A stretch of 64,000 nucleotides of DNA. Source: Lepidodermella squamata (taxonomy: Eukaryota; Animalia; Gastrotricha). Each line of letters opens with the position of its first letter. Within the stretch, counting starts at the first letter, position 1. The notes under the pieces were generated by a model that saw nothing but the letters and a program-made list of their open reading frames with translations, did no database searches and was not told where the DNA came from. A program made the translations under genes and the position numbers. Below, in pieces: positions 6,355-49,078 of the stretch. The DNA lies in contig JBLDXI010000030.1 of the NCBI GenBank assembly GCA_047495785.1, positions 1,240,001 to 1,304,000 of the forward strand. The letters run 5' to 3'.

Positions 6355-8718
6355 TTAAGTGAAAATTGAAATCCGTCTATTTTTCCTGAATAACGCCGAT
6401 TTAGTACAAATACCGTACGCAACCACACTAGACGTTGTTATCGAGTAAACAAGCCCACCGTAAGCCATTACGCTCTGCTGCAATGACGTCTGCGTTGACG
6501 GCACAATGAACGACGTCACAACTACGCAGGCGAATGTGAACAGCGAGTTGATGACGCACAGTCGGGCCGTCATAAATTCAGCATTCATCCCAGGCGGCGG
6601 CAGCATGCGTCGAACCTCGTAAGAAAACAACGATCCGAAAAGTAGCAGAAGTCCGTGAATAGCCAAAATAGCGCCTAGCCAATTATCTTGTCCGTTAGAT
6701 TGGCAAAACGCTGTCCCTATGTCATAATACAGATCCTGTGTAGCATCGAATGCAATTCTGGAAACTTCCAAGCCAACTGCCATGGGAGAAACGAGCAGCC
6801 ATGCTGTTAGAATCACTAAGTTGAAAAGTAGAAAAATCACTGTTCCCCAGGTGATGAACACATTTGGCCGCCATTTAAGGACAATCCTGTGAAAGGAGGC
6901 GGTAGAAAGTCTCGAGGCGACTCGATGTTCTGTATTATCTTGAACGGACCCTCTCTTGCTTTCGAAGTGGGACACGCGTCTTTGGCTGTATCTGCGTGAA
7001 TTTCGAGCATGTTGGGTTACGCGGCGCAAGGCGCTGTTCTCCCCGGACAGCTCCATCATTAAAATTCTTGCGAAGGAGTTGCCGTTCATTAGGGACACGC
7101 CAATTACAGCGATTGCAATTCTCGAATTGCACAGGATGACACTTGGGCTGTCATTCAAGTTCAAGGTAACTGAAATCACGCACGCGACATTGATTGTAAA
7201 AGCTCCTAAGAACATGAGGTGATTAGCAACCTTGTCATTATGATCCCCTCCTATGCTTTTCGCATTGATGAACATGAAAATGAACTGGATAAGGGTTACG
7301 GCAATCGCTAGGCCGAGGACAACGTAGAAAGACACGATGGGATACGAGTAGTATCTGCGAACAACTGTTGAGAGATCTTTCGGGGGTTTCTTCGACCTTG
7401 TATTCCACTCGATCGAGCTCAGTTGTTGGATTTGCATTTGATCCCCGAAAAATTCCATTCGATGGGTCAGCTTCAAAGTCCCATTGGCGAACTGAGCCGC
7501 CCAAAATGGCTCAGAGTCGTACTCTAGCCGTTTGGAATAATAGATTCGACCTGTTCTCAGGCCTCGGAAATCCGCTGCAGCAGCGCTTGAGTTCAGAACT
7601 TGACCAACTAACTCTGGTTTCTCCAAAAAGTCTCTTAGTGAAGAGCTGAAATTAGAGTTCAATCGTCGATCAGCCTTGTCTAGGGCCAGAAGTCCCGCCA
7701 TTACTGCATCGTGGCAGGTATGTCTCAGGGCATAATCGAGGTAGCGGCTCTGATTCGTAGCAACATCAAGAGCTTTGTCGAATTCTCGAAAATCATAACC
7801 AAGCTCCGATTTGCCATTCGGAACTACAGCACTGTAGAAAAATCCTACCCAATAGATTATTTTGAACTGCTCAATCAGGACTGCCGTTGGACAGCCAGGG
7901 ATTGCAACGGCGTTTGGTTGGAAAAAAGCCAGGGACGGTATCACAAAAGCGAAATTCGACCCTGTTATACCAGCCTTATAGCTCATACACAACAATTTTG
8001 CAAGCATCACAAGGTTAACTGAGGCGAAAATGACTATTCGGGAGTTCGAGTCTAGAACCTCTTGCAGAAGGTCGTTATCTATGTCCAACACCCCAGCAAA
8101 CATGGTGAATCGAAAGCCGATTTTGATACCCTCGACAAACAAAGCTTGTGACGATAGAACTTCATTCGGTTGTATTAGGTTCGTTATCACTGCACCCTCG
8201 CGCCACAAACCGACATTCCGAGCGAAATAAGCTAAGGATATGATCATTTTCTCAACGGGTGTTGCAATTTTGTACAGATTTGGGTAGTTCTTCCGATCCG
8301 CGGTGAACATTGGGCCGTTGCAACCGATCGCAAATTGAACCATGTTGAGCTCTCGAAAAATGCGACTTGTGGATTGGCAATTCACTACTGTTCCTATTAT
8401 AGCTGGTGAGAGGTAGATTCCAGATGCCATGTAGGCTTCAGAATTCTTCATGTAGCCGTCGTAGAACTGAAGGAACTGTCTCGGAGAGTCGATTGCGATA
8501 GGCCCTTCATTCACAATGCTAACATCGATGTGGTAATCGGGCAAGTACTCGGTTTGATTGTTGAAGAGGTCAACTGTTAACTTTATAGCAGCAGCACAGG
8601 TTCGGCCGTCCATAGTTTCTGGGGCAGGTCGAAATGCAAGCAATTTCAGCACATGAGGCTTTCTAACTTGGGCATCAGCTGCCATCAGGAGAAACGTGAG
8701 TTTCAAAAGCATCTTCAT
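6355..8718 (-). CDS. Intronless orphan class C GPCR, GABA-B receptor type (Venus flytrap + 7TM, no Cys-rich domain)
   Basis: 787-aa ORF with a signal peptide and VFT motifs (LPDYHI, PMFTADRKNYPNLYK resembling GABA-B PALSNRQRFPTFFR, CHDAVMA, ADFRGLRTG, IEWNTRSKKPPKD). Seven hydrophobic helices with TM3/ECL2 cysteines (LCNSR, FCQS) and AWLLVSPM at the end of TM4. Confidence 0.85.
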   Translation of the reverse strand: MKMLLKLTFLLMAADAQVRKPHVLKLLAFRPAPETMDGRTCAAAIKLTVDLFNNQTEYLPDYHIDVSIVNEGPIAIDSPRQFLQFYDGYMKNSEAYMASGIYLSPAIIGTVVNCQSTSRIFRELNMVQFAIGCNGPMFTADRKNYPNLYKIATPVEKMIISLAYFARNVGLWREGAVITNLIQPNEVLSSQALFVEGIKIGFRFTMFAGVLDIDNDLLQEVLDSNSRIVIFASVNLVMLAKLLCMSYKAGITGSNFAFVIPSLAFFQPNAVAIPGCPTAVLIEQFKIIYWVGFFYSAVVPNGKSELGYDFREFDKALDVATNQSRYLDYALRHTCHDAVMAGLLALDKADRRLNSNFSSSLRDFLEKPELVGQVLNSSAAAADFRGLRTGRIYYSKRLEYDSEPFWAAQFANGTLKLTHRMEFFGDQMQIQQLSSIEWNTRSKKPPKDLSTVVRRYYSYPIVSFYVVLGLAIAVTLIQFIFMFINAKSIGGDHNDKVANHLMFLGAFTINVACVISVTLNLNDSPSVILCNSRIAIAVIGVSLMNGNSFARILMMELSGENSALRRVTQHARNSRRYSQRRVSHFESKRGSVQDNTEHRVASRLSTASFHRIVLKWRPNVFITWGTVIFLLFNLVILTAWLLVSPMAVGLEVSRIAFDATQDLYYDIGTAFCQSNGQDNWLGAILAIHGLLLLFGSLFSYEVRRMLPPPGMNAEFMTARLCVINSLFTFACVVVTSFIVPSTQTSLQQSVMAYGGLVYSITTSSVVAYGICTKSALFRKNRRISIFT

Positions 8719-15475: not shown

Positions 15476-16190
15476 CAATATTAACTTCGCGTTATTTTAA
15501 TTTTTGGTCAAATATATAGGACGCTAAAATATCTGAGATTTGCGCATAGCTTTTTAATTGAGTGAGGAATGATGGCTTGCAAACAAAAATCTGGATTTTG
15601 ATGACGCGGCCAAACATGAAAAAAAACAGGTGCGATAATCAATATCTTTCATAGTATTTTTCTCGTATGGTTTTATTTGGTTTTTTCGTGATGCAGAAAT
15701 TCTTCCGCTATTTGTTCAATCGATTTTACATTTTGAATTTTTAAATAATTTTCCTTAGTCATGTTAGTAAAAGATGGATTGTACTTTGTTGGGGTTCTTT
15801 TGGGTTCTATTCAAGCCTGTTATTTTCTCACTCCTGCCCTTTGTCGCATTCCTGAATACTCGAATTTATTGATAACGCCATTGTGAACAGATGCGAAAAC
15901 GGGCGCGCCGTTCTAATTTACGAAAAATAATTTTGAACTGCATTGGAGTGAGATATGCGCGTCCTAGTAACGTGCTCGACCCTGTTAATTGCCCCACTTA
16001 TCCGATAAATTTTAATTACGACATCTGCCGTTTTTTCCGTTGACGCGATATATAAAATCAGCAATTTCCATAATCATGAAACTGCATGAAATTCGTAGGC
16101 CGAAATTTGCCATATATCTAGATATATCGAGGGTAACAGAAAATACCAAGACCGATGCGAGGTCACAAGGCAGGGGCTAACAAATCGTTT

Positions 16191-19100
16191 TTAAAACTGG
16201 GTCATCTCAAGTTGATGATGGAAGGTGGATTCAAAGGTCTTATGAAGCAGATGAAATGTTGGCCTGTCTTTCGGGTCTTGTGACCAGCATTCAAGCATGA
16301 CTGCATACACTTCTTCCGGGCATATTTCAGGCTTTGACAAGCGAAATCCATGTGATAGGTGAATTGCAATCTCCATTGGTTGCAAATCGTCATAAGGCTC
16401 AACCTTGCAATCTATAACAAAACGATGAATTTGATTTGTATCAAATGTGAAATCAGCTTTCATCTTACTTGTGAAGATTTCCCACATGACTACGCCGAAT
16501 GACCAGACGTCGCTTTTCAGCATGAAAATTCGGCGGATAAGCGATTCAGGCGGGTGCCATCGAATAGGGACTCGGTACTCGCAAGCGTCTATAGATTGAT
16601 AGAAACCATTTTCATCCTCAACCATGCGAGACAGGCCGAAATCGGAAACTTTAGCCGTTAAGCCTTCGTCAAGCAAAATGTTACGGCAGGCCAGATCCCG
16701 ATGCATGCAGTTCTTCTCGGAAAGATACGCCATTCCAGAGCTAATCTGCCGAATGAAACGGAACCGATCTTCCAAGTTCAAAGTGCCGGCTTTTGAGACC
16801 ATGTAGTCTTTCAAAGTGCCCGAGGACATGAAAGGAACAATCAAGTTAGGTTGATCCCTCAGAATGGCTATTCCAATAAGGGGTAGGACGTTAGGGTGAT
16901 GAAAGTCCTTCATTACGTGAGCTTCTTTGATCAGCCCAGCAACGTCAGCTTTCACATCGGGTCGGATGCTTTTCACGGCTACAAGTTGATCCGGTTGATT
17001 AGGCATCCGAAGGACTGCTTTTTGAACTGCGCCGAAACTGCCGGTGCCCAGCAGATCGGTTATTTCGAGCCAATCAGAGCAGACGCTGATTCGTTCAACG
17101 AGAATTACAAGATCTTCAGCTCCGTCGAGGCCTTGAAGTAATTTCGTGAAATCAGCGAATGGCTCGACGTAGTTGTTCTCATGGACACTTCTAGCTCCAG
17201 CGACTTTATGCCTTCTACGGATCACGAAGAAAGCCAAAATTCCTAGGAGTATGACTATAACGACACTTAAAGTCGAAGCGAGAATCATACTCAGATTATC
17301 TGTGAAACAGGTTTTCAGTTAATAATAATTTTAGCTATAATCAAGGTCAACTTTTTCATATTCAATTGTATCTGCTTCAATTGTATAGTAAGGGTTATGG
17401 CTGTTGTAGTTCTTATCTGCTAAGGGACATTTTGACGTCGGCTCAATAATCAGGCTGTAAATTGCTGCCGTTGTTTTAGAATCCTCTGCAATCTCTGGAA
17501 TCAGGAGTGTGGTAGATTCATCACTAAGTTCAATGAATCTTCTATTTAAGCGATCATAGAGAGTGACAATCGCTCCAAATTGCGCGTTCATCGATGAAAT
17601 TTTCACTGTATTCTCAGTTACTTCGTAGTCGATTGCAAATTTAGAGAAAATAACTATTTCTCGAAAAACCATTTTCGTTATGCCGTTTGGTAGTATTGGC
17701 CTTAGAATATCGACACGGTTCATTCGCAATCTCAAACCTCCAAATCCCGATAAAATAACATTGAGGAAAGCTGCTGCTGTATAGGTGTGTCCCATTGCGG
17801 CAGTTCTCTTGTCAGAAATGTTTCTCCAAACAAAAAAAGGACCAGAGTTGTAGTCGGACATCAATTTTTCGAAGTCGCTTCTCGCTGATTCGATTGACGT
17901 TCGAGAGCCGAGTTGCATTTCCAGAATGGCTTTGATTGCGAGGGAAGTCGCTGGAATAGGAACTTCGGAACCGGTGGTGGAAGCGAATTTCGAAGTGTAT
18001 CTCTAAAAAAAAGAGAAAGGTTCATGAAGTTCGAACCCAGAAATTGGAGCAACAACTTACTTTGATGTCATTCTCCAGAAGGCTATATGGAGCTTGTTCA
18101 AGAAATTTGCCCGAAAAATTGTATCCAATAGGGTAGTGAGCTAGGAGAACCTCAGCTTGACTGATCGTGTCTCCGAAATTGTAACCCTCGAATTCTCTAT
18201 TACTATTCTCAGCCTTGTCGAAGGGAAAGAAGAATCTCCTCGTCACATTTTTCATCTCTTCCTCGATAAAGGAATCGCTCAAACATGCCAGATACTCGTT
18301 GAAGTGCAACGCAAGAGATGCCAGGATGTTGGTAACTAAATTTTTGCTTTGATTCTGGTGCAATTCATCAGGGCCACAAACGTCGTTGATTGAGACGTAA
18401 AAGGTGTCCTTCAGTATTTTCTTAGCAATCATTTGCGAGATCTGATCGTTTATCTGCACTATTTCCGTTAATTTACTTTTCCCTCGCGTCGCTGAATACA
18501 AAATTCGGGTTGAAAAAGATAGCAACAATTCGCTGTAGAGCGCTTGTTCGGAGCAATGATCGCACCAAGTAGGCGGTATCACCAATTCATGAGCTGTTTC
18601 GAATTTCATTAGCTTCTCCTTGTTAACTGCCTTCCAGCGATTGAGGATTAACATAGGGATTAAGTCTGGTTGCAGGAGAGCTAGAATGGGTGTGATGAAG
18701 ATTTCGGATTCGGGAGTAACATGGCCGCCGAAGTTTTGCCTCGAACCACCCCTGCCCAAGCCACACGCTGAAACGCCGGCGAAATCTGCGTCGATTCCAG
18801 CTTCATTAATAGACTGATTCATGCGTTTTTTGTACGGTATTTGGCTGTAGATATTGTAAATAGCAGAGCCTATAAGCTTGTTAATCGTGTCTGCTTGCAA
18901 TCCTGTTTTTGCAGCGAGAATTAAAAATGAACAAATTAATGATTAACGAATTTGTCAATAAGATAACCTGTAAATTTGATATCCATTTTATAAATCCTGG
19001 CCTTCCAAGATGCCAATTGCGCGATCACAAGTTCAACAGGGCTTTCCCACGTAAATCTTGTGAATTCATAGTGAGCAATGCTGTAAATTTGATCCATGGA

Positions 19101-19936
19101 CATCCAGGATACTGTTCTTTCGTTATAGTTGCTATCCAAAACAGTTTCGAAATCCAACGAAGCATTCGTAGCGAATATTTCAATTGAATTTTTAGCAGAC
19201 AGTGAGTTGAAAGCAGTCACCTTATAATGCCTTAGAATAAAGAAATCCGTAACTATAAGGTCAAGTGATTCGGGTGTTACCTACGTGCTCTGAATCCCGT
19301 CGTGATCGTATAATTCCGATTCAACTGAAATGTCTTCATGAAAGAGATCGCTTTCCCACAGCGATTTGTAAATGTCCGGCTTGCGAAGTGTAAGCTTGGA
19401 TCCCAGGTGATCATCCGAAGCTTCAACAATCAGCACGTTGAAAAAAGTTCTTGAGAGATAGAAACTACACCCTGAAATTAGACGCAATAACAAGCCGCTC
19501 TCCGTACGAATCTCCTGTTCAAACAGGCCGATTTTATAGTAAAATTTGAATTTTTCGGCTTTGATCTCGTCAACTACGCTGTTAAGCTGAACTGTCTCGA
19601 TTCGGAATACCGCGTAATTCGGCAGCCGAATGCGACGACTGTAGCCATCAGAGGTTTTACGGAACATCGTCGATGAATAAATTGATTCCTAAGCCAGAAG
19701 CAATTGAACTAAGCGTGACATATGAACTGACTGAAGCATACACTGTAAGCAGTTGTTCCAATGACGCCGGATGAGAGCTCCGGTAACAGTGATGTATCAG
19801 GCAGATCGGTTACTTCGATGAAATTGACCCCTGCTAACAAACTATAGATGGTATGTGGTATGCTCGGTTCCATTTGAATCGAGAATGGCCATGACGCGAG
19901 ACAGGCAACAATTAGACCAAGATTGAAATCAATCAT
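16191..19936 (-). CDS. GH65 (PGGHG-like) ectodomain + TM + MET-like tyrosine kinase, copy 1
   Basis: Signal peptide, then five in-phase GT-AG-linked exons with GH65/PGGHG-like motifs (AGVSACGLGRG..FGGHVTPESEIF; CGPDELH..NLVTN; EFEGY..SQAEVLLAHYP; GPFFVW; AAFLNVILSGFGGLR). About 30 nt later an exon encodes TM + RRRHK + a kinase (GTGSFG, VAVK, HPNVLPLIG, HRDLACRN, DFG, VPIRW, SDVWSFG). The donor joining ectodomain and TM exon is not canonical in this copy. Confidence 0.8.
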
Positions 19937-20495
19937 CGCCTAAATAAGTAATAGATTAATAGGAGAAAACGAACAAAATTAATCGCAGTTTTTTAGACAT
20001 GATTTATGCTGTTGATATTTTATAGATGCAGACCCCGGGCCTTATCTTTCAGACGACATGTTTTTCGTATTACTAGTTTCCGATAATTAAATTGACCATA
20101 TGCCGCTAAAAAGTGCCGCTCTCAAAAACTCAAAAACACTCTCTAAAAATGAATTAGGACGAAAAGAAGGATCTTCGAGCTGGATGGCATTTCGATAAAA
20201 TTTTGGCCCGATTTTAATATTCAAATTTATAAGGCTTGGTATCACTCTCAGACCAACCGAATAAGACAGCTGCATAATTCGTTGCTAGTTTCTCTTTCAG
20301 TATGCATTTTTCTGGGGGAAAACCACGCTCTCATTTGTAAACATTCAGCAAGAAAAAACTTGAGCGGTAAGTCAAGTCAACATGGCCAGCCAAAAACCCG
20401 CCCGACCGACCTCAGCAGCAAAGATAAGTCAATTTTTGACTCGATTGTAAAATCCCCGAACTCTGTCTGGCGTCTAAAAGAAAATTAAACTAAAT

Positions 20496-22945
20496 GTGAT
20501 CAGTCCGTCCCCAGATGAATTTTTCGCTCATTTCAAAAATATTTTTGCCTCCCAACTTGCTTTTAATTATCGTGACATTGAAACTCCTGAAGCGAATGAC
20601 TCGGTAATAGATATCGCAATTCTGCTCTCGCCTGTAACTCAAAAAGAGATAATTGAGAATCTTAAGGACTGTATCCTTTCATCTGCCGCTGGTCTGCGAT
20701 GGTGTGAAATTCTCAAATATAAATGACGAAATCACCCTATTGGCTCCTTACCTCTCAGTGCTCTATTCGAAAACCAGCTCTGAAGAGATATGCCAAGAGG
20801 AGTGGAAGACTTCCTTGATCACTCCTGTGTTCAAAAGGGGGATGCTAACAACGTCGGCAACTAGCGTCCTATTTCTTTGCATCCGTGCGTCGCAAAGCTC
20901 TTCTCTAAAATCCTGGACTCCGGGCTCCGTGCGTGGCTTCATCCCGATTCCAAAGCTCTGAACGTTGAGCAATTTGGTTTCCATTCCAGTTAATCCACTA
21001 ATGATGGCGCTACAGTTCTTCATTGCGGTTTAGCTCCAGAGGTAGAGCGTGGCGTCTCTGTCCACGCCTGTTCACACTAGTGCGTTTGACACGACCAATC
21101 ATCAGTTATTGCTGAAAAAGCTACGCCAGCGTGGTATTCCTGAGAGCTTCGTTCGAATAATTGCCAATATGTATTCTAACTGCCGAGCGTCGATCTTGGT
21201 CAACCCTGAGCAGCAAGTGCACGTTTTTTGCAAAATACTGCGTGGGAATTGCAGGAAACTGCCTGAAAACGGCATTTACTGTCATTTTTCACATTTTTTC
21301 AAAACTTACTGCAGTTTTTGGAAAAAACTGGAAGTTAAAGCAGGAATCCGTAGTCATTTCGTGAAATTGACACAGTTTTTTCATGAAACTCGGGAAATTC
21401 GCGGCATTTTATTTGCGACCCGAAGTTAACTTCCATGTCAAATATTTCTTCGTCGCGCAGTTGAAAAACTTTCGATTTTTATTTATTTTCACTGCGAAGT
21501 GAGAAGTATAGTGAACGAAAGTGAACGAAATTCGATGGCTCGACGTCTAGTTTTCATTGCGGAAAATTCGAAAATCTGCCTTCTACCTTTCGGGATCAAA
21601 CTGTTTTTATTTATCATCAGGGTGCGATCTTCGATCCCGGAGCAGCCGGGGATGGAAAATTTTTTTTGCTGTATTTGCCAAAATGACTGGTCATTTTGAC
21701 TTATAACCGAGCGAACCGAGAAAATTTTGAAAAATGTCCCGTTTTTCCCCGATTTTTCCTAATTTTTCCTAATTATTTACCCGGATCCTGAAAATAACCG
21801 AATTTTTATCGTTTTCAGCCTGAACCATCAAGAATATAAGAATGCCAGCAAAATCCGATAATTTAGATATTTCGTAAAAGCCAAATTTTCAATGACTGAA
21901 AATTGTCGTTCTAAATAAAAGCTGAAATAGGGCAAAATCATTGTTATTGGGGCGCTCGATTGTTGTGCACACAAGCCTCAGGGTGTTGCGTAATCACGCC
22001 ATGCTTCAAAAATGTGGCTTTTTGCTTCATTCCAATCATCTTATTTTTGTTTTAAATTTCAAAACATCAGTTCCTATGTCATATTTAGTAAGAATTTTTC
22101 GTCCGGCCTCAATTTCGCATTTTGAGCTTCATCAATCCCCGCCGCCTTGCTACCAGGTGTGTCGACCATGCAATTTGAACAAGTCAGATAATTATCGAAT
22201 TTTCAAGGTAATTTTGATATTAATTCGATTTTCTTTAATTTACCCGCAATTTTCAAAGGTTTGTCCCGCGAATCGATTTAGCTGTCAAACCAGTCTTAAC
22301 GAGCCGGTCAACAATTCGTAACGGTATCGATGAATAATTAACAAGGTATTTTCGTGTTTAATTAATTTCAATTATAATTTCAATTTATGTATATAGTTTC
22401 GCTGGCCTGCTCCAGTGGCGGTTTCTGCATCAGTCACAGTCGTTGTTCGATCATGGCGTCTCGTGAAACATCATTCACTATTAACTTGACAATGTTTCTA
22501 TTTTTTTATTGATCAATTTTGATGAATAAAGAATAAAATGATACTTGCATCGACGGAAGGGTAAAACTGTCTTTTTTAAAGCTGAGAGTGAAAGCCGCAT
22601 TGTTAATAGTGAATGTGAAGTACAAATGGCCCCAAGTTAAAGTTCTATTAGCGATGAGCAAGTGACAGCGCAGTAGAAACCATCTCTCACCAGAAAAACT
22701 CTCACCGCGGGAAACCACTCGGAAAAACTGTCCAGCTCGGCAAAAAACTAGACTTTCAACAGAATACTGTCCACAGACAAACTCTCGCTAATTTGCATAT
22801 TTAGTTTTTTTGATTGAGGCAGTTAAAAGGCCCGAAATTGTCGCTCAGGGAATGGCGACGTAGCCGATTCCTTTCCCCTTAATCGGGGAGATCCGCTCTC
22901 GCCTCTCTTGCTCACACTATTTATCGACGATATCTTCGACGAGTT
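20496..22945 (+). mobile_element. Degenerate non-LTR retrotransposon RT fragment, split by an insertion
   Basis: WKTSLITPVFKRG, RPISL, QFGF, SAFDTTNHQLLLKKL; resumes after 22850 as NGDVADSFPLNRGDPLSPLLLTLFIDDI. Frameshifted. Confidence 0.75.
21204..22850. mobile_element. Non-autonomous CMC/EnSpm-like DNA transposon
   Basis: Termini CCCTGAGC...GCTCAGGG with a 2-bp TSD AA (21202-21203, 22851-22852). Excision restores the RT frame LVNGDVADSF. Confidence 0.7.
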
Positions 22946-23684: not shown

Positions 23685-25216
23685 TATCGGTAGCTCATCA
23701 CGTAGAACACGCGAAGACAAGCAAGATAAATTGTTAGAAACGAGATTTTTCAGAATATTTTCATTTTATTCCGTCAATGTGTATGATAAACAAAACAGCC
23801 GTGGCAACGGTGAATAGAATGTAAATTGTAATTGCCGAAGCGAACGCCGCGTTGTCAATGAGCAAAATGTAGGGCACGAAACGGCCGAAACGGCCGAATT
23901 TTCATGCTCTCTTTGTTGACTGCACGCCAACGCCTCAGGATTAGCTCAGCAATTAAACCCGGGTGCAGGAAAGCTAGAACGGGTAGGATGAAGATTTCGG
24001 ATTCCGGAGTGACATGACCGCCAAAATTCTGCCTTGAACCACCCCTTCCTAGGCCACACGCTGAAACGCCAGCAAAATCCGCGTCGATTCCAGCTTCGTT
24101 TTTGGATTGGTTATTGCGTCGATCGAAAGGTATTTGGCTGAAGACATTGTAAATAGCCGAGTGTGCCATTTTGTTCATCCTATCTGCACGCGATCCTTTT
24201 TTGATAACGAAAATTAACATATTTACATTCAATGTTCAATAAATTAACCTGTAAATTTGATGTCAAATCCATACGCCCTCATTTCCCAATATAACTTTTG
24301 GGAGGTCACAACTTCAGCAGGTTTTTCCCAAGGGAATATAGTGAATTCATAATGAGCAGTGTTGTAAATGTGATCAAGGGACATCCAGGATACTGTTACT
24401 TCGTTGTAGTTGCTGTCCACAGTAGTTTCGAAATCCAATGAAGCACTCGTAGTGAAAATTTCGATTGGATCAGAAGAAAGTGGGTTATAAGCTGTCACCG
24501 TATGATGCCTGAAAGATTCAAAATATCTGTATTTATAAGTTCAATAGGATTCGGTGACTTACGTGCACTGAATCCCATCGTGAACAAAACCTACCGATAC
24601 CACTGCGATATCTTCTTTAAAGAAATCGCTTTCCCATAGCCCTTCGTAAATGTCTGGCTTACGAAGTGTTAGCTTGGATCCGATATGTCCTATCGAAGCT
24701 TCTACAATCAGCGCGTTGAAATATGTTTTTGAAAGATAGAAACTACAACCGGAGATCAGATGCAACAGCAAGCCGCTCTCCGTAAGAATCTCCTGTTCGA
24801 ACAGGCCGACGTCATAGTAGAATTTAAACACTTTGGCTTTAATCTTATCAACCACGTCGTTAAGCAGTACTGTCTCGATACGGAAAACCGCGTAATTCGG
24901 CAGACGAATGCGACGAATGTAGCCATCAGAGGTTTTACGGAAAGAAGTCGATGAATAAATCGATTCCTAATCCAAAAGCTATTGAATTCGAAATGTATGG
25001 GAACCAAAAGTAGCATACGTTGTACGCAGTTGTTCCTATGACGCCGGATGATAACTCCGGAAGTAAAGTTGTATCATTAGGGAGATCGCTTACTTGGATG
25101 AAATCGAAACCTGCTAACAAATTCGAGATGGTATCAGGTTTAAGTGATCCGAGTTGATTTGACGAAGGCCATGACATGAGACAGGCAACAATTAGACAAA
25201 GATTAACAGAAATCAT
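23685..25216 (-). pseudogene. Truncated GH65-RTK copy 3, fused to a duplicated Cys-loop M4 remnant and the C21orf58-like start region
   Basis: Exons 1-4 are paralogous to 19936-18600. From ~23900 down to ~23685 the sequence matches 14300-14080. Confidence 0.8.
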
Positions 25217-26040
25217 CGCCTAAATAAATCAACGCCAACAATGATAACATCGGGCAATAGAGCAGCCTGCAGATGTAGGTCTTACAGGCTAAATCAAGGG
25301 TGGAATCAAGGGTGGTTTGGTAAATTGGTTAACGAAAAGCGAGCCGATTTTGCCGAAATAACGATAGTTTTGATTTTCATATTTTTCGAGGGGCGCAATT
25401 TAACAGAAAACGAAAAAATGACCCTATTACGTTTTTTTGAGAACATTTTTTCTTTGTTGGTGAATTTACATGATTTAAGCTTGCGATATTTTGTGGATGC
25501 CGAAAGCCGCAACACGCGCCTTATCTTCCAGGCGACATATTTTTCGTGATAATATTAGTTTTCCCGTAATTATATCTAGCATATGCCGCAATGAAAGTGC
25601 AATGAACAAGTCCATGAGACATTTGTTGCTTAGGCTCGATTGATTTGAAACAGTTCACTACCTCAACCTGAATTAGTACCAAAAGTAGGTAAATGGTATT
25701 TCGATATCATTTTGGCCCGAATTCCGCCAATTTAATATTCACATTGATAGGGCCTGGAATTCACTGAGACAAAACGATGGTGACGGAATGAAACAGCGGC
25801 ATAAGATTCGTTCTTAATTTTTCTTTCAGTCTGCAATTTCAGCATTTTCTGGGGGAAATTACGCTCTCATTGGTAAACATTCAGCGAGAAAAAATTCGCG
25901 ATCTCGGTTAAATTATTACGCGATTTTTGTATACAATATGGACAGTGAATATGAACAGCTGCCAGCAGATTTCTCGCGGCAAATTACCCGATCCCAGCAA
26001 ATGGGAAGGGACAGTTGTTTTAGTTTCTACTCCGAAATAA

Positions 26041-30276: not shown

Positions 30277-33220
30277 TTATTCATAATTCAGCACGTACAA
30301 CGCATAAAGGTTGATTCCAAAGAAAAAGGCCACAGCCATAACAAAGCCGAGTGCATTCAGCAGATTCACGACTGAAATGCGTAGGCAGCCGAATTTCAGC
30401 ATCTTGTTGGCTGATTTTGCCATATCGGTCGCAATATAGCCGAGAAGCAAGTTGTAAAAGCTGACCAATCCGGTGTAGACTGACATGTAGAAAATGTACT
30501 CGGTCAACAGGATCATCGCAGCACTTTTCGGGACATCTTCCAAGACCTGATTCTGGGCAACAGTCAATGCGAGAAGGATCGTGACTACGAACATCACTCG
30601 ATCTGGCTTGTTAGCTTGCATAAGAAACGCTGCTAGTTCCAAGAATGTGAGAACCAGACAAGGACCAATGATGTTCAATAGGTAGTAGTTGGGCCTCCTT
30701 CTAAAGCTTAGTTTGAAAACAGCCACGCTGACTTTGCTTCCAATGGTCGGAGCAGACAACAGTTTGATTTCCCATTTCGTTTCCTTAGGCAGAATCTCCC
30801 ACTGGGCAACTGGGGATAGCTCATCAGGTGTTATCATATTCAGCTTGGAAAACGCTGTAAGATTGACTGAGCGATGAATGCCGAACTTGATCTCGCAGGT
30901 CTGCGTATCGAACGGGAACTTTCGCAGGTCCATGTCGCAAGTTGACTTAAACACGCCAACTCTCGACCAGTAGAACTGCATGTTAAGATACATTTCATCG
31001 AATGGCCTGATTATGAAGACGAAATCGTCCCCGAGTTGGCTATTCACCATGTAGACGTTATCAGGGCTAGATCTAAATGTCAAAGGAGGCAGCCAGTAGT
31101 CATCTTTACTTGCCACAAACACTCGAGAAGGACCGTCAACGTCAACTGGAATATCCGTCTTTTTACAAGTCGAAACGTTCCAATGCAGCTGAATGATCCC
31201 TGATAACGAAATCGTCTCACCAACCTCGTCGATCCCGAAAAATTGGTCGACCACAAAAATGGCTGAAATGGTAGTTGCACTGCCGTTGTTGGGCGGAGCG
31301 CTTCTGTCCGCAGAAAAGTCATGGCATGAGCTCTTAGCAATGTCCGAATCTCGAATTTTAGGCGTGGCGGTTTCTCCAACCAATTTGGGCATTCCTTCTT
31401 CTTTTTTCTGTTCCAAAGTTTTTTGCTGCGGTGGCGGGGCGGGGGTGGTCGTAGTAGTCGTTAGGCTAGTAGTTGTTTCGACCACTCGAGTCGTTGTAGC
31501 TGCTGTTGTATCGACTGCACCTTTCGTTGTTAGCATTGGTGACGTAGCTGCAATCGATCGTGTAGTACTATCCACAACTGCCGTAGTCGATACAACATTA
31601 GTTGTTGTCTTTAGCGACGAAGTTGAGATTGCAGCGCTCCCCGTCGTGGTTGAGATGTTAAGTTTATCTGTGAATAAGGTTTTTTTCAAACAATTCCTGA
31701 ATTGAAAGATGTTTCAATGCAACTCATTATCAGTTTGACGTAGAATCCGTTGGTTCGGTTCACGTTACTTCCAAATTGGTACTGGAGCACTTGCAACTCT
31801 CGTGCTTCGCTGGGTACGCTCGAGATCGATCCTGTCCATTTTTCTGTACTCTCGCTGTACATGTTATATAGCGTCTTATTAATCACGCCGTTTTCAAAGT
31901 CGATTGTGTTGATATAAAGATTAAATCCTCTGCCAGCTGACGTGTAGTTGAGATTTGCATATCTAGAAGAGAACAATTCAAAGTTAATAATACTCATCCA
32001 GTAGTTTCAATCACTGAAGTTGTCGATCCTCAGGTATCTTGACTCGCCACATGCATATTCTGTTGATAGTATTTAGCAGATTCGTCGGTTTCACCCCGAT
32101 CACGGCCTCTTCGAATTCCCAATCGATGGTTGCCAACGCATTGCATCCCCCGGTAATCTCGGGAAAAATCTTGGAAACAAGGCTTGATTGACCGACTGAA
32201 TCAACTTGCTCGAAATATATTTCCAAGCGAACGAAAAATGTAACTGGCGTTAATGTAACAAGCGCGGTTGAGCTTTTGCTCGTCAATGTAACGTTATTAT
32301 CAGGCCCTAGGTCGCTTGGGTAGAAAACACCGAGTGTTGGCGCTACACCCGAAAAACCTGCATCGTAGAGCTCGACGCGGACGTCATTTGTAAGCACCTT
32401 ACTACCATTGGCATGCACAACGAGCAAGTACATTTTAGAAAATGTGAGAACTTTCCCTGGGTTTGCGAAAATTCTCCACTGATTTGGCAAAGAGGACCCG
32501 ATGATGGTTACGTTGATTACTCCATTTTTCAAACCTCGAATCGTTGTTTTTTCCGCGAGGTACCATTCAGTGCTGTTGACAGTGTTGTTAGCCGTGTACT
32601 GACACGAAGGCCCGAATGATTTATCCGGGCACATACAGGCATATCCATTCCAGCACAAGCCCGTGCCACAGTTTGGAGAGCATGTGCTAGCCGCAGATGC
32701 TTGAAATGTGAAGAATTAATAAACTGGTTGTAACTTTACTCCTCTCTTACGGCTATCACAATTAGGGCCCTGGAACCCATATTTACAGTTACAGAAACCA
32801 ATCGCGTTACATGAGCCCGAATTCGGGCACCCAGCTGTTAAAGTAAATATTAAAATTGGTCATAATTTCCCATAGCCCTACAAATGCAATTAGTCGGCGG
32901 CACATCCCAGGAGCCATTGCTCAGGCATCGATGCTGGCTCGCAGGCTTGTTATTGATCAAGACCTGGATCGTGTCGTTGTAGTTATTCAGTTTATACACA
33001 TCGTCCTGGGTAATGTCTTGCCAAACGTAGGATGTGGCTGCGCTCGAACCATTCATGTACTGGTATCGAGCAAGTGCAGTTCTAAATCCCGTGCAAGTTG
33101 AGAAAGCTGAAATGTATTATGATTACGATTAAGGACAATTCTAGCGCATACTGATTTACCTGTGCAGATCAACTGCGAGAGAAGCACAAGAGAAGCAAAC
33201 GCAATATTGAAAAGCGCCAT
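30277..33220 (-). CDS. Modular Cys-loop receptor copy A: signal peptide-Sushi-like-EGF-EGF-CUB-like x2-mucin stalk-LBD-4TM
   Basis: MALFNIAFASLVLLSQLICT signal; RCLSNGSWDVPPTNC; CPNSGSCNAIGFCNCKYGFQGPNC; CSPNCGTGLCWNGYACMCPDKSFGPSC; CUB-like WRIFANPGK..LTSKSSTALV and ICMWRVKIP..GFYVKL. Then a Thr-rich stalk, YWLPP, CDMDLRKFPFDTQTC, RRRPNYY and M1-M4. Short phase-compatible introns link the exons checked. Confidence 0.8.
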
Positions 33221-34009: not shown

Positions 34010-35742
34010 TACAGAAAAACTATATATACAATGTTATATGAGTTAATATACAAGGAAGTTTCCATCCAACGCCTCGGGCCGCCGCTTTGCGCGTGCCGCC
34101 ACCCGAGGCCCAACCGCTGCCTGCATCGACGAAAATGTACAAGAAGTCCAACAACCGCCAGAGGTACCAACAACCAACAACACATCGCCTCGGGCCGCCG
34201 CTTGGTGCGTGCCGCCACCCGAGGCCCATCCGCTACCAGGATCGACGGTCACCGCCGAACTGCATCAACGATCAGCAAGCTGAGGTCCATGACTCTTAGG
34301 TTCATGTCTCAGTAGTACAATTCAATTTAAAGAATCTAGGATCTAGGACAAAAATAGAAAACATAGCCGGACTTGAACCGGGGCCTCTCACGGCACTAAA
34401 CCAAAGACGATTTAAACCGGACCCGAACCGATGCCTTTCACACACAGAGAGAATTTGAAAAGAACTAAAGGGACTAGAGAAAGATATAAGATACAAGAGA
34501 GGAACCCAGAGGGAACCTACTGCGCACGGATTGCAGCTATCCGCCGCTAGTCAGGAACCGGAAAGGCCCGGCCGCGCAGGGAGCGATGTTACCTTGCACC
34601 GCCACCCACAACGAACCGGTCCTCCCCGCGACAAGCTGCGCTCGGGCCGTTGCTTCCGTGGACCGCCACCCGCCGCTGGCTAGCCGCCTCTAACACCCGA
34701 CAGTAACCTAAACAGCTAAAATCGTAGGGAGTCGATCATCTGACGTTCGAATAGCCGGTAGAGGACCAGCGCCCAGAAGATGGTCAAGAAAGAAACGAAC
34801 CGGCGATTTACTCTCCGGAATGGGCCTATCGCGACTCTGGCGAACTATTCCGCCTAGCACACTACCTGCTTCGAGCGCCCTGTTGAAACAATGGAACGAC
34901 AAGCTGGACAAACGGTCTTGGATTACTTGGAAGTCGGGAAACGTCGCCTGCAGTCGCCGCTGATAAAGTTGATCCGGGCACCGACGGGGGAGCCCCAAGA
35001 TGATCTTGAGGGCCCGCCTCTCTAGGACCGCCAGTGTTTCGATATACTGTGGCTTCGAGTTAGCGAACGCCGGGGCACCGAATTCTAACAACGGCCTGAT
35101 TACGCTCTTGTAAAACAAGAGGCCCAAGGTGGGGTGGGTCTTGACTTTTCCGCGAAAAAGAGCGAAAATACGAGGGAGAGCTCGGGACGACACGTGTTGT
35201 AAGTGAGGCGTCCAGCATAGGTGCTTGGACAGCCAAACGCCCAGATATTTGAATTCCTGAACCCTTGGCAAGCAAATGCCGCCTAGCTGGAGCTGACCAG
35301 CTGTGTGATTTACATTGGCGCCGAATGCGACCCACTCGCACTTCCTCGGGTTCAGGTCTAGTCTCCAACGCTGAGACCAGCGTTCTGTGACCCGAAGTGC
35401 CGCTTGGACACGAGCAGTTGCAAGTGGGGCCGGTCGCCCAGTAGCCCATACAGCCTGGTCGTCGGCGTATGCCGCCGCGGCAGTTCTCTTTAGTGCGTCG
35501 TCCTTGTCTACCTCCGCTGGGAGGGACGAAGATGTGTAGATTATGCAGAGTATCGGGGATAATGGTGATCCCTGAGGGACTCCGCAAGCTACCTCGACAT
35601 CCTCACTAAAGCTGTCCCCTACTCTGACTCGCATACGCCTGTCGCGTAGAAAATCGGATATCCATCGCACAACGGCCACGGGTAGGCCGAGGCCTTTTAA
35701 AACCATGCGTAAACCGTTGTGCAGTCTTTCCAGCTTATTCAA
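34010..35742 (-). mobile_element. 5'-truncated non-LTR retrotransposon (Jockey/I-like RT C-terminal half plus 3' UTR)
   Basis: Uninterrupted ORF 34708-35742: GVPQGSPLSP, YADD, LNPRKCE, FKYLGV, FYKSVIRPLLEFG. The 3' boundary is approximate. Confidence 0.85.
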
Positions 35743-43667: not shown

Positions 43668-46537
43668 TCATTCGTACTTGAGAACGTACAACGCATATAG
43701 GTTGATTCCAAAGAAAAAGGCCACAGCCATAACAAAGCCGAGTGCATTCAGCAGATTCACGACTGAAATGCGTAGGCAGCCGAATTTCAGCATCTTGTTG
43801 GCTGATTTTGCCATATCGGTCGCAATATAGCCGAGAAGCAAGTTGTAAAAGCTGACCAATCCGGTGTAGACTGACATGTAGAAAATGTACTCGGTCAAAA
43901 GGATCATCGCAGCACTTTTCGGGACATCTTCCAAGACCTGATTCTGGGCAACAGTCAATGCGAGAAGGATCGTGACTACAAACATCACTCGATCTGGCTT
44001 GTTAGCTTGCATAAGAAACGCTGCTAGTTCCAAGAATGTGAGAACCAGACAAGGACCAATGATGTTCAATAGGTAGTAGTTGGGCCTCCTTCTAAAGCTT
44101 AGTTTGAAAACAGCCACGCTGACTTTGCTTCCAATGGTCGGAGCAGACAACAGTTTGATTTCCCATTTCGTTTCCTTAGGCAGAATCTCCCACTGGGCAA
44201 CTGGGGATAGCTCATCAGGTGTTATCATATTCAGCTTGGAAAACGCTGTAAGATTGACTGAGCGATGAATGCCGAACTTGATCTCGCAGGTCTGCGTATC
44301 GAACGGGAACTTTCGCAGGTCCATGTCGCAAGTTGACTTGAACACGCCAACTCTCGACCAGTAGAACTGCATGTTAATATACATTTCATCGAATGGCCTG
44401 ATTATAAAGACGAAGTCGTCCCCCAGTTGGCTATTCACCATATAGACGTTATCAGGGCTAGATCTAAATGTCAAAGGAGGCAGCCAGTAGTCTTCTTTAC
44501 TTGCCACAAACACTCGAGAAGGGCCATCAATGTCGACTGGAATATCCGTCTTTTTACAAGTCGAAACGTTCCAATGCAGTTGGATGATCCCTGATAACGA
44601 AATCGTCTCAGCAACCTCGTCGATCCCGAAGAATTGGTCGACCACAAAAATGGCTGAAATGTTAGTTGCACTGCCGTTGTTGGGCGGGGCGCTTCTGTCA
44701 GCTGAAAAGTCGTGACATGAGCTCTTCGCAATGTCCGAATCTCGAATTTTAGGCGTGGCTGTTTCTTTGGCTAACTGGGGCATCGCAGCTTCTGCCTTCT
44801 GCTCCACAGAGAGTTTTTGTGGGGGCGGGGCAGGGGTGGTCGTAGTAGTTGTTGGACTAGTCGTTGTTTCGATCGCTCGAGTTGTGGTTGGAGCTGTAGT
44901 TGAATCGACTGCACGATTCGTTGTTTGCATTGGTGACGTTGTAATAGATCGTGGCGTAGTATCTGCAACTGCCCCAGTCGATGCAATATCGGTTGTTGGC
45001 TGTGAAGTCGGACTATTCGATGCAATGACGGTCGTGGCTGGGGTCTTTGACATTGTACTGGTCAGAAGGGGCGAAGTTGCAGGTGTTGTTGACCTTGTAG
45101 TTGGACTATTCGTCGCCATGACAGTCGGTATATTCGTGGTTGAGGCCTTTGAGGTTGTACTCGTCTGAAGGGATGAAGTTGAGGTTGCGACGCTTGATAT
45201 CGTGCTGGTTGTTGAAATGTTCAGTTTGACTGTAAATATGCTCTTATTAAGCGCATGATAATGAAAAATAATTTCCAAACGCAACTCATTTTCAACTTCA
45301 GATAGAACCCATGACTTTGATTGAACGAACTTCCTCTCGGATGAAAAAAGACATAGATCTCTCGCGTGTCGCTAGATATGGTTGACATCGGTCCTGGAGA
45401 TAATTCCTCCTTATTTTCTCTGGTATCAACGTTGAAAAGCTTCGAATAAACTGTCCCTTTTTCGTAGTTGATTGTGTTAAGCTCAAGATATATCCCTCGG
45501 TCGCGAGTAATCGTGTAGTTGAGAAGAGAATATCTGAAAAAAGAGAAATTGACAGTCGTTACTATTCATTTGGTTTGTAATTAATCACTGAAGTTGTCGA
45601 TCCTCAGGTATCTTGACTCGCCATAAGCACTGCCTGTTGATAGTATCGAACTGAATCATCGGCCTCACCCCGATCACGGCCTCTTCGAATTCCCAATCGA
45701 TGGTTGTGAACGCATTGCATATTCCAACTATCTTAGGAAAAATCTTCGTACCAAGGCTTGATTGATCTGTTGCATCGACTTGCTCGAAATAGATTTCCAA
45801 CCGCATGTAAAGTACGACTTCAATCGAGGAGAATGTAACAAGCGCAGATGAGCTTTTGCTCGTTAATGTGACATTATTATCCGGCCCTAGGTCGCTTGGG
45901 TAGAAAACACCGAGTGTTGGCGCTACACCCGAAAAACCTGCATCGTAGAGCCCGACGCGGGCATCATTTCGGATCTTCCCATCAGAATCAACGACGCGCA
46001 AGTACATTTTAGAAAATGTGAGGGCTTTCCCTGGGTCTGCGAAAATTCTCCACTGATTTGACTGATAACCGGCGAAGATAGTGATGTTGATTAGTCCATT
46101 CTTCAAACCTCGAATAGTTGTCTTCTCCAGAAGATACCAATCGATGCTGTTGATTGTGTTGTTAGCCGTGTACTGACATGATGGCCCGAATGATTTATCC
46201 GGACACATACAGGTAAATCCATTCCAGCACAAGCCCGTGCCACAGTTTGGCGAACATGTACTAGCCGGCGATGCTTGAAATTTGACAAATTTATAAAAAT
46301 TTCCTAACTTTGTTTCGCTCTTACGACTATCGCAATTAGGGCCCTGGAACCCATATTTGCAGTTACAGAAACCAGTCGCGTTACATGAGCCCTGATTCGA
46401 GCAACTACCCGGGCAAGTCGATAAAGCTGAAATATATTATTATTACGATTAAGGACAATTCTAACGCATAGCGCACCTGTGCAGATCCACTGCGAGAGAA
46501 GCACGAGAGAAGCAAACGCAATATTGAAAAGCGCCAT
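43668..46537 (-). CDS. Modular Cys-loop receptor copy B: signal peptide-EGF-EGF-CUB-like x2-longer mucin stalk-LBD-4TM (no Sushi-like segment)
   Basis: Exon layout parallels 30277-33220. The first EGF reads CPGSCSNQGSCNATGFCNCKYGFQGPNC. The channel part is almost identical to copy A; no lesion seen. Confidence 0.8.
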
Positions 46538-48135: not shown

Positions 48136-49078
48136 ATGGCTCAACCAGATCAACCTTCTACATCACGTGGTAGCAGGTTCGTTCACAGCAATGATCATCA
48201 AGACCTGACTAAACTAAGCATGATGAGCAACACTTGGAAGAAAATGAACACAGCTTTGGGCCTGTATGCCAAATGGGTGGAACGATGTTGCGGCGAAAGA
48301 TTCCTCAATCGTGCCTGTCGATGCTCGCGACTTGAAAGATCTTCCGAAAAACATTCTGGCAGATCAGGTAGCTTTGCCTGTTTTTTTTATTTTCCTTGTC
48401 GATTTTTGTTTTCATGGCAGGTTTCGATGTTTGTTCTTGCTCTGAGGAAGGATGAAGAAACACTCTACCCGCTGAAAACTGTGTCCGAGTATGTCGACAT
48501 GTTGCAACGGTATTTGAAGGAGAATGGTGTCCAATTTGTGTATCGTTCGGATGTCCAATTCAGAAAGGTGGTTCAGGCGCTTAATCTCTACGGCAAGAAG
48601 GGCAACGATGCAGGGGTAAACAAGCCCGTAAGGCAGTCGGATGAATTGCCGATAGAGATCGAACGTGAAATGTTCAGCTTGGGGATTCTTGGGCGGTCTA
48701 ATCCACGATTGCTGTTACGAACAATTGGATATTTGATCGGTATTCGCGTTGCTTCTCGCGGCGGGGGCGAACTGAGGTCGTTCGAACACCGTCACGTAAA
48801 GAGAATGGAAACTACAAATGGTCGGCCATATTTCCTGATGACGATTCCTCCATCCAAAACTACGCACACCAGCCTTCGAAACCTGCATTCTAAGATTACG
48901 GAATTCAAAATATTTCCGACACCGAATGCAGGCGAGAGATGCCTCTTCTCGCTCTTGGAACTCTACTTATCGAAGGTTCCCAATCGCGCCGAAACTAGTT
49001 GGTTCTTCCGCCAATCGATAGCCAACCCCGCCGATCCGGATGTATGGTACATGAAAACGGCAGCCGGACGGCACAAGC
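48136..49078 (+). mobile_element. Crypton-like (DUF3504/ZMYM-type) tyrosine recombinase, interrupted and 3'-truncated
   Basis: FVLALRK..E..YP..T, LQRYL, GILGRSNPRLL, ASRGGGELRSF, CLFSLLELYLSKVP, WYMKTAAGRHK(L). It continues only a few nt beyond the P element (52885-52889). Confidence 0.7.

Follow-up and report, generated by a model that had tools for sequence, protein, structure and literature searches.

In a 64,000-nucleotide (nt) stretch of the genome of the gastrotrich Lepidodermella squamata (contig JBLDXI010000030.1 of assembly GCA_047495785.1, positions 1,240,001 to 1,304,000 of the forward strand; from here on, the window), a gene on the minus strand (copy 1) and its tandem copies are predicted to form a small, lineage-specific family of type I receptor tyrosine kinases (RTKs) whose ectodomain is a complete, catalytically dead glycoside hydrolase of the PGGHG type (family GH65). 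We put the probability of this reading at about 0.6. As judged from the encoded proteins, a fused receptor in which GH65 module and kinase form one polypeptide is plausible. Such a receptor had been proposed by an earlier, sequence-only reading of the same DNA. That proposal is favoured by an in-frame intron in copy 2, by a donor allele of copy 1, by the co-duplication of both parts and by the selection acting on them, while it is weakened by the finding that both assembled full copies are broken.

Gene model, ectodomain and kinase

Copy 1 is a multi-exon gene that extends from an ATG at 19936 to a stop codon at 16191-16193, which are exactly the ends of the interval 16191-19936 given by the sequence-only reading. 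In our seven-exon model, all introns are of the GT-AG type and have lengths of 51-65 nt, and exons 1-5, when spliced, give 785 codons with zero stops and consistent phases. The features of copy 1, in the direction of transcription, are:

19742..19936, minus strand: exon 1, ATG and a hydrophobic, signal-peptide-like N-terminus (MIDFNLGLIVACLASWPFS...)
19285..19688, minus strand: exon 2, N-terminal beta-sandwich region of GH65
18968..19230, minus strand: exon 3, end of the N-domain and helical linker
18061..18902, minus strand: exon 4, (alpha/alpha)6 barrel core with GHVTPE (18709-18726), PDEL (18361-18372) and SQAE (18151-18162)
17352..18002, minus strand: exon 5, remaining barrel and C-terminal beta domain with WRN (17820-17828) and NYNSHN (17394-17411), then a variable stalk
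17300..17351, minus strand: junction intron, in the assembled allele GAAAAA/GTTGACC, phase 0, where exon 6 needs phase 1
16469..17299, minus strand: exon 6, NLS sequon, transmembrane (TM) helix (17217-17285), RRRHK stop-transfer, juxtamembrane region and kinase up to PIRW
Within exon 6, minus strand: kinase motifs, G-loop (17025-17048), VAVK, HRDLACRN (16680-16703), DFG and PIRW
16412..16468, minus strand: intron 6, 57 nt, GTAAGA...ATAG, in frame, so that the open reading frame (ORF) reads through
16191..16411, minus strand: exon 7, end of the kinase C-lobe, short tail and stop codon

The 785 amino acids (aa) encoded by exons 1-5 matched a custom profile of 22 canonical animal PGGHG-like proteins with 217 bits over positions 17-341 and 387-680 of its 702 positions. 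This match spans N-domain, linker, barrel and C-domain and confirms the earlier claim of a full GH65-like domain. The Pfam family Glyco_hydro_65m was matched weakly, by exon 4 only (27.7 bits versus a cut-off of 27.0). An ectodomain that misses GH65 profiles had been named as a finding that would speak against the sequence-only reading; it hits both. Using phmmer with exon 4 against the Protein Data Bank (PDB), we found the human PGGHG chains 9sd4-9sd8 as the best sequence match (1.5e-10). Since the best canonical relatives are named PGGHG-like proteins, from molluscs, insects, a crinoid, an annelid and amphioxus, the ectodomain module is, by homology, a descendant of the animal PGGHG family. 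Ahead of the PGGHG-homologous part lies a hydrophobic N-terminal extension of ~35 residues (LGLIVACLASWPFS), with the profile alignment starting at residue 36; based on its hydrophobicity, this extension is a putative signal-peptide-like segment. N-X-S/T sequons number 7-8 in the ectodomain and 0 in the 340-residue cytoplasmic part.

Human PGGHG requires Asp301, Glu430 and Glu574 (PMC11012932), and according to their PDB titles 9sd5 and 9sd6 are the E574Q and E430Q/E574Q mutants of PGGHG, respectively, the latter in complex with kojibiose. FjGH65A, a bacterial hydrolase of GH65, uses Glu472 as acid and Glu616 as base, and its E616Q variant keeps <0.1% activity; glucose in subsite -1 is held by Trp343, Asp344, Lys538 and Gln539, four residues described as completely conserved across GH65 hydrolases including PGGHG (PMC8626586). 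The motifs GHVTPE, PDEL, SQAE and WRN, which the sequence-only reading had picked out, are present in both full copies and fall into the aligned columns of GHxFWD, PDEY, KQAD and W[TS]E. The alignment also bears out that the acid Glu is kept while the Trp-Asp pair and the base Glu are replaced:

GHxFWD to GHVTPE in both full copies: Trp>Pro and Asp>Glu (human Asp301 is Glu here)
PDEY to PDEL in both full copies: general acid Glu (human Glu430) kept
KQAD to SQAE in both full copies: Lys>Ser, Gln kept
W[TS]E to WRN in copy 1, copy 2 and the relative P0001 (see below): general base Glu (human Glu574, FjGH65A Glu616) is Asn

Three of the four subsite -1 glucose-binding residues are changed (Trp/Asp/Lys to Pro/Glu/Ser). 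Based on these residues, the ectodomain is probably a pseudo-enzyme that has lost hydrolase activity, and the earlier suggestion to this effect gains support from the exchange of the base Glu for Asn and of Asp301 for Glu. The further suggestion of a sensor for glucosides or collagen glycans is weakened by the loss of Trp, Asp and Lys from the four subsite -1 positions: the ectodomain is probably not a canonical glucoside binder, and, with three of these four residues replaced, its ligand cannot be deduced from PGGHG. Within the ectodomain, constraint is strongest in the barrel core with the pocket region (ratio of nonsynonymous to synonymous divergence [dN/dS] 0.17), and this region is therefore still selected for something.

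Exon 6 opens with the NLS sequon, followed by the TM helix ILASTLSVVIVILLGILAFFVI (Kyte-Doolittle 2.9) and the basic stop-transfer sequence RRRHK. This is the single strong hydrophobic helix between ectodomain and kinase, in line with the one TM helix noted earlier. The kinase, previously described as a tyrosine kinase with intact core motifs, matches PK_Tyr_Ser-Thr (PF07714) at 4e-76 and contains all of GTGSFGAV, VAVK, HRDLACRN, DFG, PIRW, DVWSFG and RPTF; its closest PDB matches are MET, MER, TYRO3 and EGFR. An in-frame intron with GTAAGA...ATAG ends lies in the kinase ORF of both full copies (16468-16412 in copy 1, 57 nt; 55508-55458 in copy 2, 51 nt) and appears as a gap/insertion of ~20 residues in the alignment to EGFR. 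In a search with the kinase exon among proteins of 200-640 aa, no match exceeded 40% identity, and the best match was an unrelated tandem-kinase locus.

The relative P0001 was found by phmmer of exon 4 against 1.84 billion representative proteins, which gave 123 homologues, the others being ordinary GH65 proteins. It is a 796-aa ORF on a eukaryotic metagenome scaffold (locus L001) and is the sole close relative found, with 39% identity in the barrel core. P0001 has in common with the window GHITPD (GHxTP[DE]), WRN and NYNSHN as well as the position of intron 1, after LPELSSGxIGTTxY, and it has a candidate signal-peptide exon. It differs from the window in that the acid Glu is lost (TDKL), that it is otherwise intronless and that no kinase lies within 10 kb. 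An AlphaFold model of P0001, computed with the window exons in the alignment, had a pLDDT of 75 and a pTM of 0.83, and its best structural match was human PGGHG (9sd8; TM-score 0.79, E 4e-32). The structural comparison with PGGHG that the sequence-only reading had asked for thus has a positive outcome for P0001, which is a proxy and not the ectodomain of the window itself. P0001 appears to be membrane-tethered: ~11 residues past NYNSHN, in the same ORF, it has a hydrophobic tail resembling a glycosylphosphatidylinositol (GPI) signal. In the window, the sole hydrophobic segment after NYNSHN is the exon 6 TM helix, 19 residues on. The apparent tethering of P0001, for which the TM helix of the kinase exon is the only corresponding segment in the window, favours the fused reading. 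As judged from these sequences, the dead GH65 subfamily is older than its association with the kinase. The L001 scaffold (1-22391) has a GC content of 37% and carries many ankyrin-repeat ORFs, an ELO elongase and an SSF transporter.

Tandem copies and their neighbourhood

The arrangement of copy 1 recurs in the window as one further full copy and one fragment:

55258..58982, minus strand: copy 2, same seven exons, 3396 nt in frame
23903..25216, minus strand: copy 3, 5' fragment covering ectodomain residues 1-385, 68-74% identical to copy 1, ending inside exon 4

The sequence-only reading had counted the arrangement twice, and the seven-exon structure is indeed the same in both full copies, although each carries one disabling lesion, which counts against their being intact. 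It had also described a kinase-less third copy; a kinase remnant is indeed missing there, but the copy is only a 5' fragment (residues 1-385), downstream of which lie unrelated sequence and reverse-transcriptase fragments (20653-21429).

Between copies 1 and 2, dN/dS is 0.245 for the ectodomain at a synonymous divergence (dS) of 0.58, and 0.109 for the kinase at a dS of 0.41. These coding-sequence comparisons indicate that purifying selection has acted on ectodomain and kinase alike over most of the period after the duplication, and the single lesions in copies 1 and 2 look recent.

Other receptor genes in the window are likewise paired. Class C G protein-coupled receptor (GPCR) genes (ANF_receptor plus 7tm_3) occur twice (6355-8718 and 59686-62092, minus strand), as do Cys-loop channel genes (30277-31689 and 43668-45284, minus strand). 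The paired GPCR, channel and GH65-kinase copies suggest segmental duplication of a receptor-rich block. For a 787-aa class C GPCR ORF, a large protein collection yielded no relative at E<=1e-10. Transposon remains comprise a P-element/THAP9-like transposase ORF with TNP-like domains, a DUF3504 ORF and reverse-transcriptase fragments; they are located at:

50069-51880, plus strand: transposon remains
48136-49083, plus strand: transposon remains
34708-35742, minus strand: transposon remains
20653-21429, plus strand: transposon remains (reverse-transcriptase fragments)

Rfam and tRNA scans of the window gave no matches.

The exon 5/6 junction and alternative readings

Whether GH65 module and kinase are joined depends on the intron between exons 5 and 6. 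In copy 2, the phase-1 intron 56388-56340 (GAAG/GTAACC...CACAG/AT, 49 nt) is canonical and joins the GH65 part to the TM-kinase part in frame, as the sequence-only reading had stated. For copy 1, the read evidence comes from one public DNA run (X1), the sole run that covers the locus, which may derive from the same sample as the assembly. A bubble contig in X1 over ~17266-17381, with a depth of 60/125, differs from the assembly by 17314 T>G, 17342 C>T and 17350 A>C (plus strand). On the coding strand, 17350 A>C changes GAAAAAGTTGACC to GAAAAAGGTGACC, which creates the donor GAAAAAG/GTGACC in phase 1 with a 51-nt intron, and this alternative allele reads ...EYEK-D-NLSMILAST... in frame. Because copy 2 has the same AAG/GTRACC donor, this in-frame donor is, by comparison of the copies, the ancestral state, and the assembled G>T is derived and disabling. 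Among the variants listed for the X1 reads, the sole exonic indel spans 3 nt and no change creates a stop.

Other features of X1 concern the copy number and haplotypes of the locus. The second haplotype is locally very divergent, for example at 19302-19485, where 187 nt contain 14 differences and 3 gap positions, the latter from a 3-nt insertion. Depth rises 2-5 fold over conserved segments, reaching 651 at 16464-16604 versus ~125 elsewhere (15900-20100); the raised depth suggests that the genome contains more kinase and GH65 paralogues at other loci. Contig joints in X1 were considered as splices and rejected: their ends are not GT/AG, and they lie over diverged intron and stalk segments, as paralogues or haplotypes would produce. 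We also discarded a GC-AG donor in copy 1 (TATA/GCTAAA..., phase 1), which is a poor donor and would leave a 36-nt intron compared with 49-67 nt in the other 11 introns, and a downstream acceptor in copy 2 (atctacag/CC) that would skip the TAA described below but is out of frame. At the locus there is no phase-0 acceptor able to rescue the assembled copy 1 allele. If the junction intron is retained (17300-17351 and 56340-56388), a stop follows within 5-7 codons in both copies; it is possible that retention yields a soluble ectodomain from both, as a putative decoy isoform.

A number of observations weigh against a fused receptor. In assembled copy 1, the sole GT donor AAA/GTTGAC (exon end 17352) is in phase 0, the acceptor 17300/17299 needs phase 1, and splicing leads out of frame to ...EYEKII and a stop, so that the joining at ~17350/17300 expected by the sequence-only reading fails in the assembled allele; left unspliced, the junction meets a TAA at 17331-17333. 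In copy 2, a TAA interrupts the reading frame at 57901-57903, a codon that is TAC in copy 1. Neither assembled full copy, then, encodes an intact fusion. X1 is genomic DNA whose contigs cross the introns ungapped and gives no splice evidence, and the contig with the variant at 17350 could stem from a near-identical paralogue instead of an allele. The protein and metagenome searches returned no orthologue with the fused architecture: four of the exon 4 homologues have at least 1000 aa and, scanned with Pfam, contain no kinase domain, while the rest are too short for GH65 plus kinase; a word-index search with P0001 returned P0001 itself and one weak match; and two scans of metagenome loci for fused relatives gave nothing. 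Finally, an acceptor-like ttag/tcag lies 3-5 nt before the ATG of all three GH65 copies, and past the stop of the unspliced junction an acceptor follows at ~30 nt, with an in-frame ATG 12 nt further that opens onto the TM helix. Upstream of the ATGs, the acceptor-like sites have no visible donor (in copy 1, tttatttag lies 3 nt before the ATG), and by their sequence they form a pattern expected of spliced-leader trans-splicing. The sites, with the motifs tttatttag, cacattcag and tttcacag 3-12 nt upstream of ATGs, are:

19937-19950, minus strand: upstream of the copy 1 ATG
58983-58995, minus strand: upstream of the copy 2 ATG
25217-25230, minus strand: upstream of the copy 3 ATG
17300-17310, minus strand: upstream of the exon 6 ATG of copy 1
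56340-56350, minus strand: upstream of the exon 6 ATG of copy 2

These acceptors are what would be expected if each full copy consisted of two co-transcribed cistrons, one for a secreted GH65-like pseudo-enzyme (ending in ...VDLDYS or ...GNPC) and one for a separate, spliced-leader trans-spliced kinase with an N-terminal TM helix (MILAST...). This arrangement, which we consider unlikely, would also account for the stop 5-7 codons past the putative donor in the unspliced reading of both copies and for the ATTAAA 16 nt before the acceptor in copy 2, and the inability of the assembled copy 1 allele to make a fusion speaks in its favour. However, a consensus donor (AAG/GTAACC or AAG/GTGACC) lies at the usual distance of 49-51 nt from the acceptor and keeps the frame both in copy 2 and in the alternative allele of copy 1; with such a donor at a normal intron distance, cis-splicing to that acceptor is expected. 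Moreover, the 30-nt gap contains no poly(A) or 3'-end signal conserved between the copies, a kinase with a three-residue ectodomain would be unusual, and P0001 is membrane-tethered within the same ORF. The lesions themselves could instead mean that a past fusion is decaying, with copies that are now pseudogenes and make nothing functional, and it is true that all three assembled copies are interrupted, by a frameshifted junction, a nonsense codon and a truncation, respectively. We regard this as improbable, because each full copy has one lesion in ~3.4 kb, dN/dS values of 0.11-0.25 at a dS of 0.4-0.6 point to selection over most of the divergence, the other copy 1 haplotype has the in-frame donor, the reads contain a 3-nt indel as their sole exonic indel and no stop among the listed variants, and the depth gain in conserved segments suggests that additional paralogues exist at other loci.

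A fused receptor could also have kept its enzymatic activity, with the GH65 domain hydrolysing or transglycosylating by means of the PDEL Glu and another base and with catalysis coupled to the kinase. The acid Glu is kept in both copies, Asp301 is conservatively replaced by Glu, and no part of the ectodomain is more constrained than the pocket region (dN/dS 0.17), all of which would suit an enzyme. Yet the base Glu is Asn, and the equivalent E616Q exchange in FjGH65A leaves <0.1% activity (PMC8626586); of the four subsite -1 residues, only one survives; and P0001 has also lost the acid (TDKL), so that the subfamily does not depend on it. We therefore hold an active enzyme to be highly improbable.

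Proposed receptor and known systems

In the reading that we favour, a type I RTK with a dead GH65 ectodomain, the encoded protein would have ~1135 aa. Behind a signal-peptide-like N-terminus it would carry the four GH65 parts (N-domain, linker, (alpha/alpha)6 barrel and C-domain); a short stalk of variable sequence, which bears an N-glycosylation sequon, would then lead into the single TM helix, and a juxtamembrane segment would connect this helix to the tyrosine kinase. The remodelled former active-site pocket, or a surface of the GH65 module, would bind an extracellular ligand that need not be a glucoside; alternatively, the module might be triggered by oligomerising, as GH65 enzymes do (FjGH65A is a hexamer; PMC8626586). 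Ligand binding or oligomerisation would juxtapose the cytoplasmic kinases and lead to trans-autophosphorylation. The assembled haplotype would carry one recent lesion per full copy (donor G>T in copy 1, TAC>TAA in copy 2), and the other copy 1 haplotype would keep the in-frame donor; on account of these single recent lesions and that donor, the family seems to have remained functional in evolution while null alleles segregate. More tentatively, and at somewhat less than an even chance, an intact haplotype would encode a working single-chain receptor in which the GH65 fold has been repurposed as a ligand-binding head for a non-ancestral ligand, that is, not the collagen disaccharide.

The GH65-kinase architecture is apparently undescribed. 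We found no paper linking Glyco_hydro_65 or GH65 with receptor or tyrosine kinases, the one match being irrelevant, and the earlier statement that no RTK class with a GH65 ectodomain has been described is consistent with our limited protein and literature searches. Extracellular domain shuffling is a recognised mode of RTK diversification in holozoans, and the main text of that RTK survey mentions no glycoside-hydrolase ectodomain (PMC8662651). The kinase of the window is a bona fide tyrosine kinase like those of shuffled lineage-specific RTKs, with MET/MER-type kinases closest in the PDB. If the fusion is real, it would show how freely tyrosine kinases acquire new ectodomains by shuffling in an animal lineage that has been little sampled.

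PGGHG itself is a soluble enzyme. PGGHG/ATHL1 (GH65; PDB 9sd4-9sd8) resembles the window proteins in whole-length homology and in the kept acid Glu of PDEY. It differs from them in sequence (~16-30% identity), in the base Glu574, which is Asn in the window, and in the subsite -1 Trp/Asp/Lys, which are Pro/Glu/Ser; conversely, the window proteins have a hydrophobic N-terminal extension and a downstream TM helix and kinase that PGGHG lacks. If our reading holds, the ectodomain would be a natural experiment in which an active site has been remodelled for binding, with base and subsite -1 lost and the pocket the most constrained part, and GH65 would join the pseudo-enzyme receptor modules.

Among plants, receptor-like kinases (RLKs) with a GH18 ectodomain, such as tobacco CHRK1, are represented by 91 sequences of this kind (PMC5485988). 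They are similar to the window in that a TM helix connects an ectodomain from a glycosidase family to an intracellular kinase, and differ from it in the GH18 ectodomain, the Ser/Thr kinase of the RLK/Pelle type and their independent origin. Provided that the fused mRNA is real, the window would thus represent an independent animal case of a glycosidase fold turned into a receptor head, here wired to phosphotyrosine signalling.

The closest functional likeness is to beta- and alpha-Klotho with FGFR, in which a glycosidase-like ectodomain drives tyrosine-kinase signalling. In beta-Klotho, GH1-like domains without a catalytic Glu form the high-affinity receptor for FGF19/21 that drives FGFR (PMC10229096). 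Klotho, however, is built from tandemly duplicated GH1 domains, lacks a kinase and works in trans with FGFR, whereas the window has a single GH65 module that is apparently in cis with its kinase and is not a member of the Klotho family. If the reading proposed here is correct, the proteins of the window would be a cis-fused counterpart of Klotho-FGFR and the first enzyme-derived GH65 receptor.

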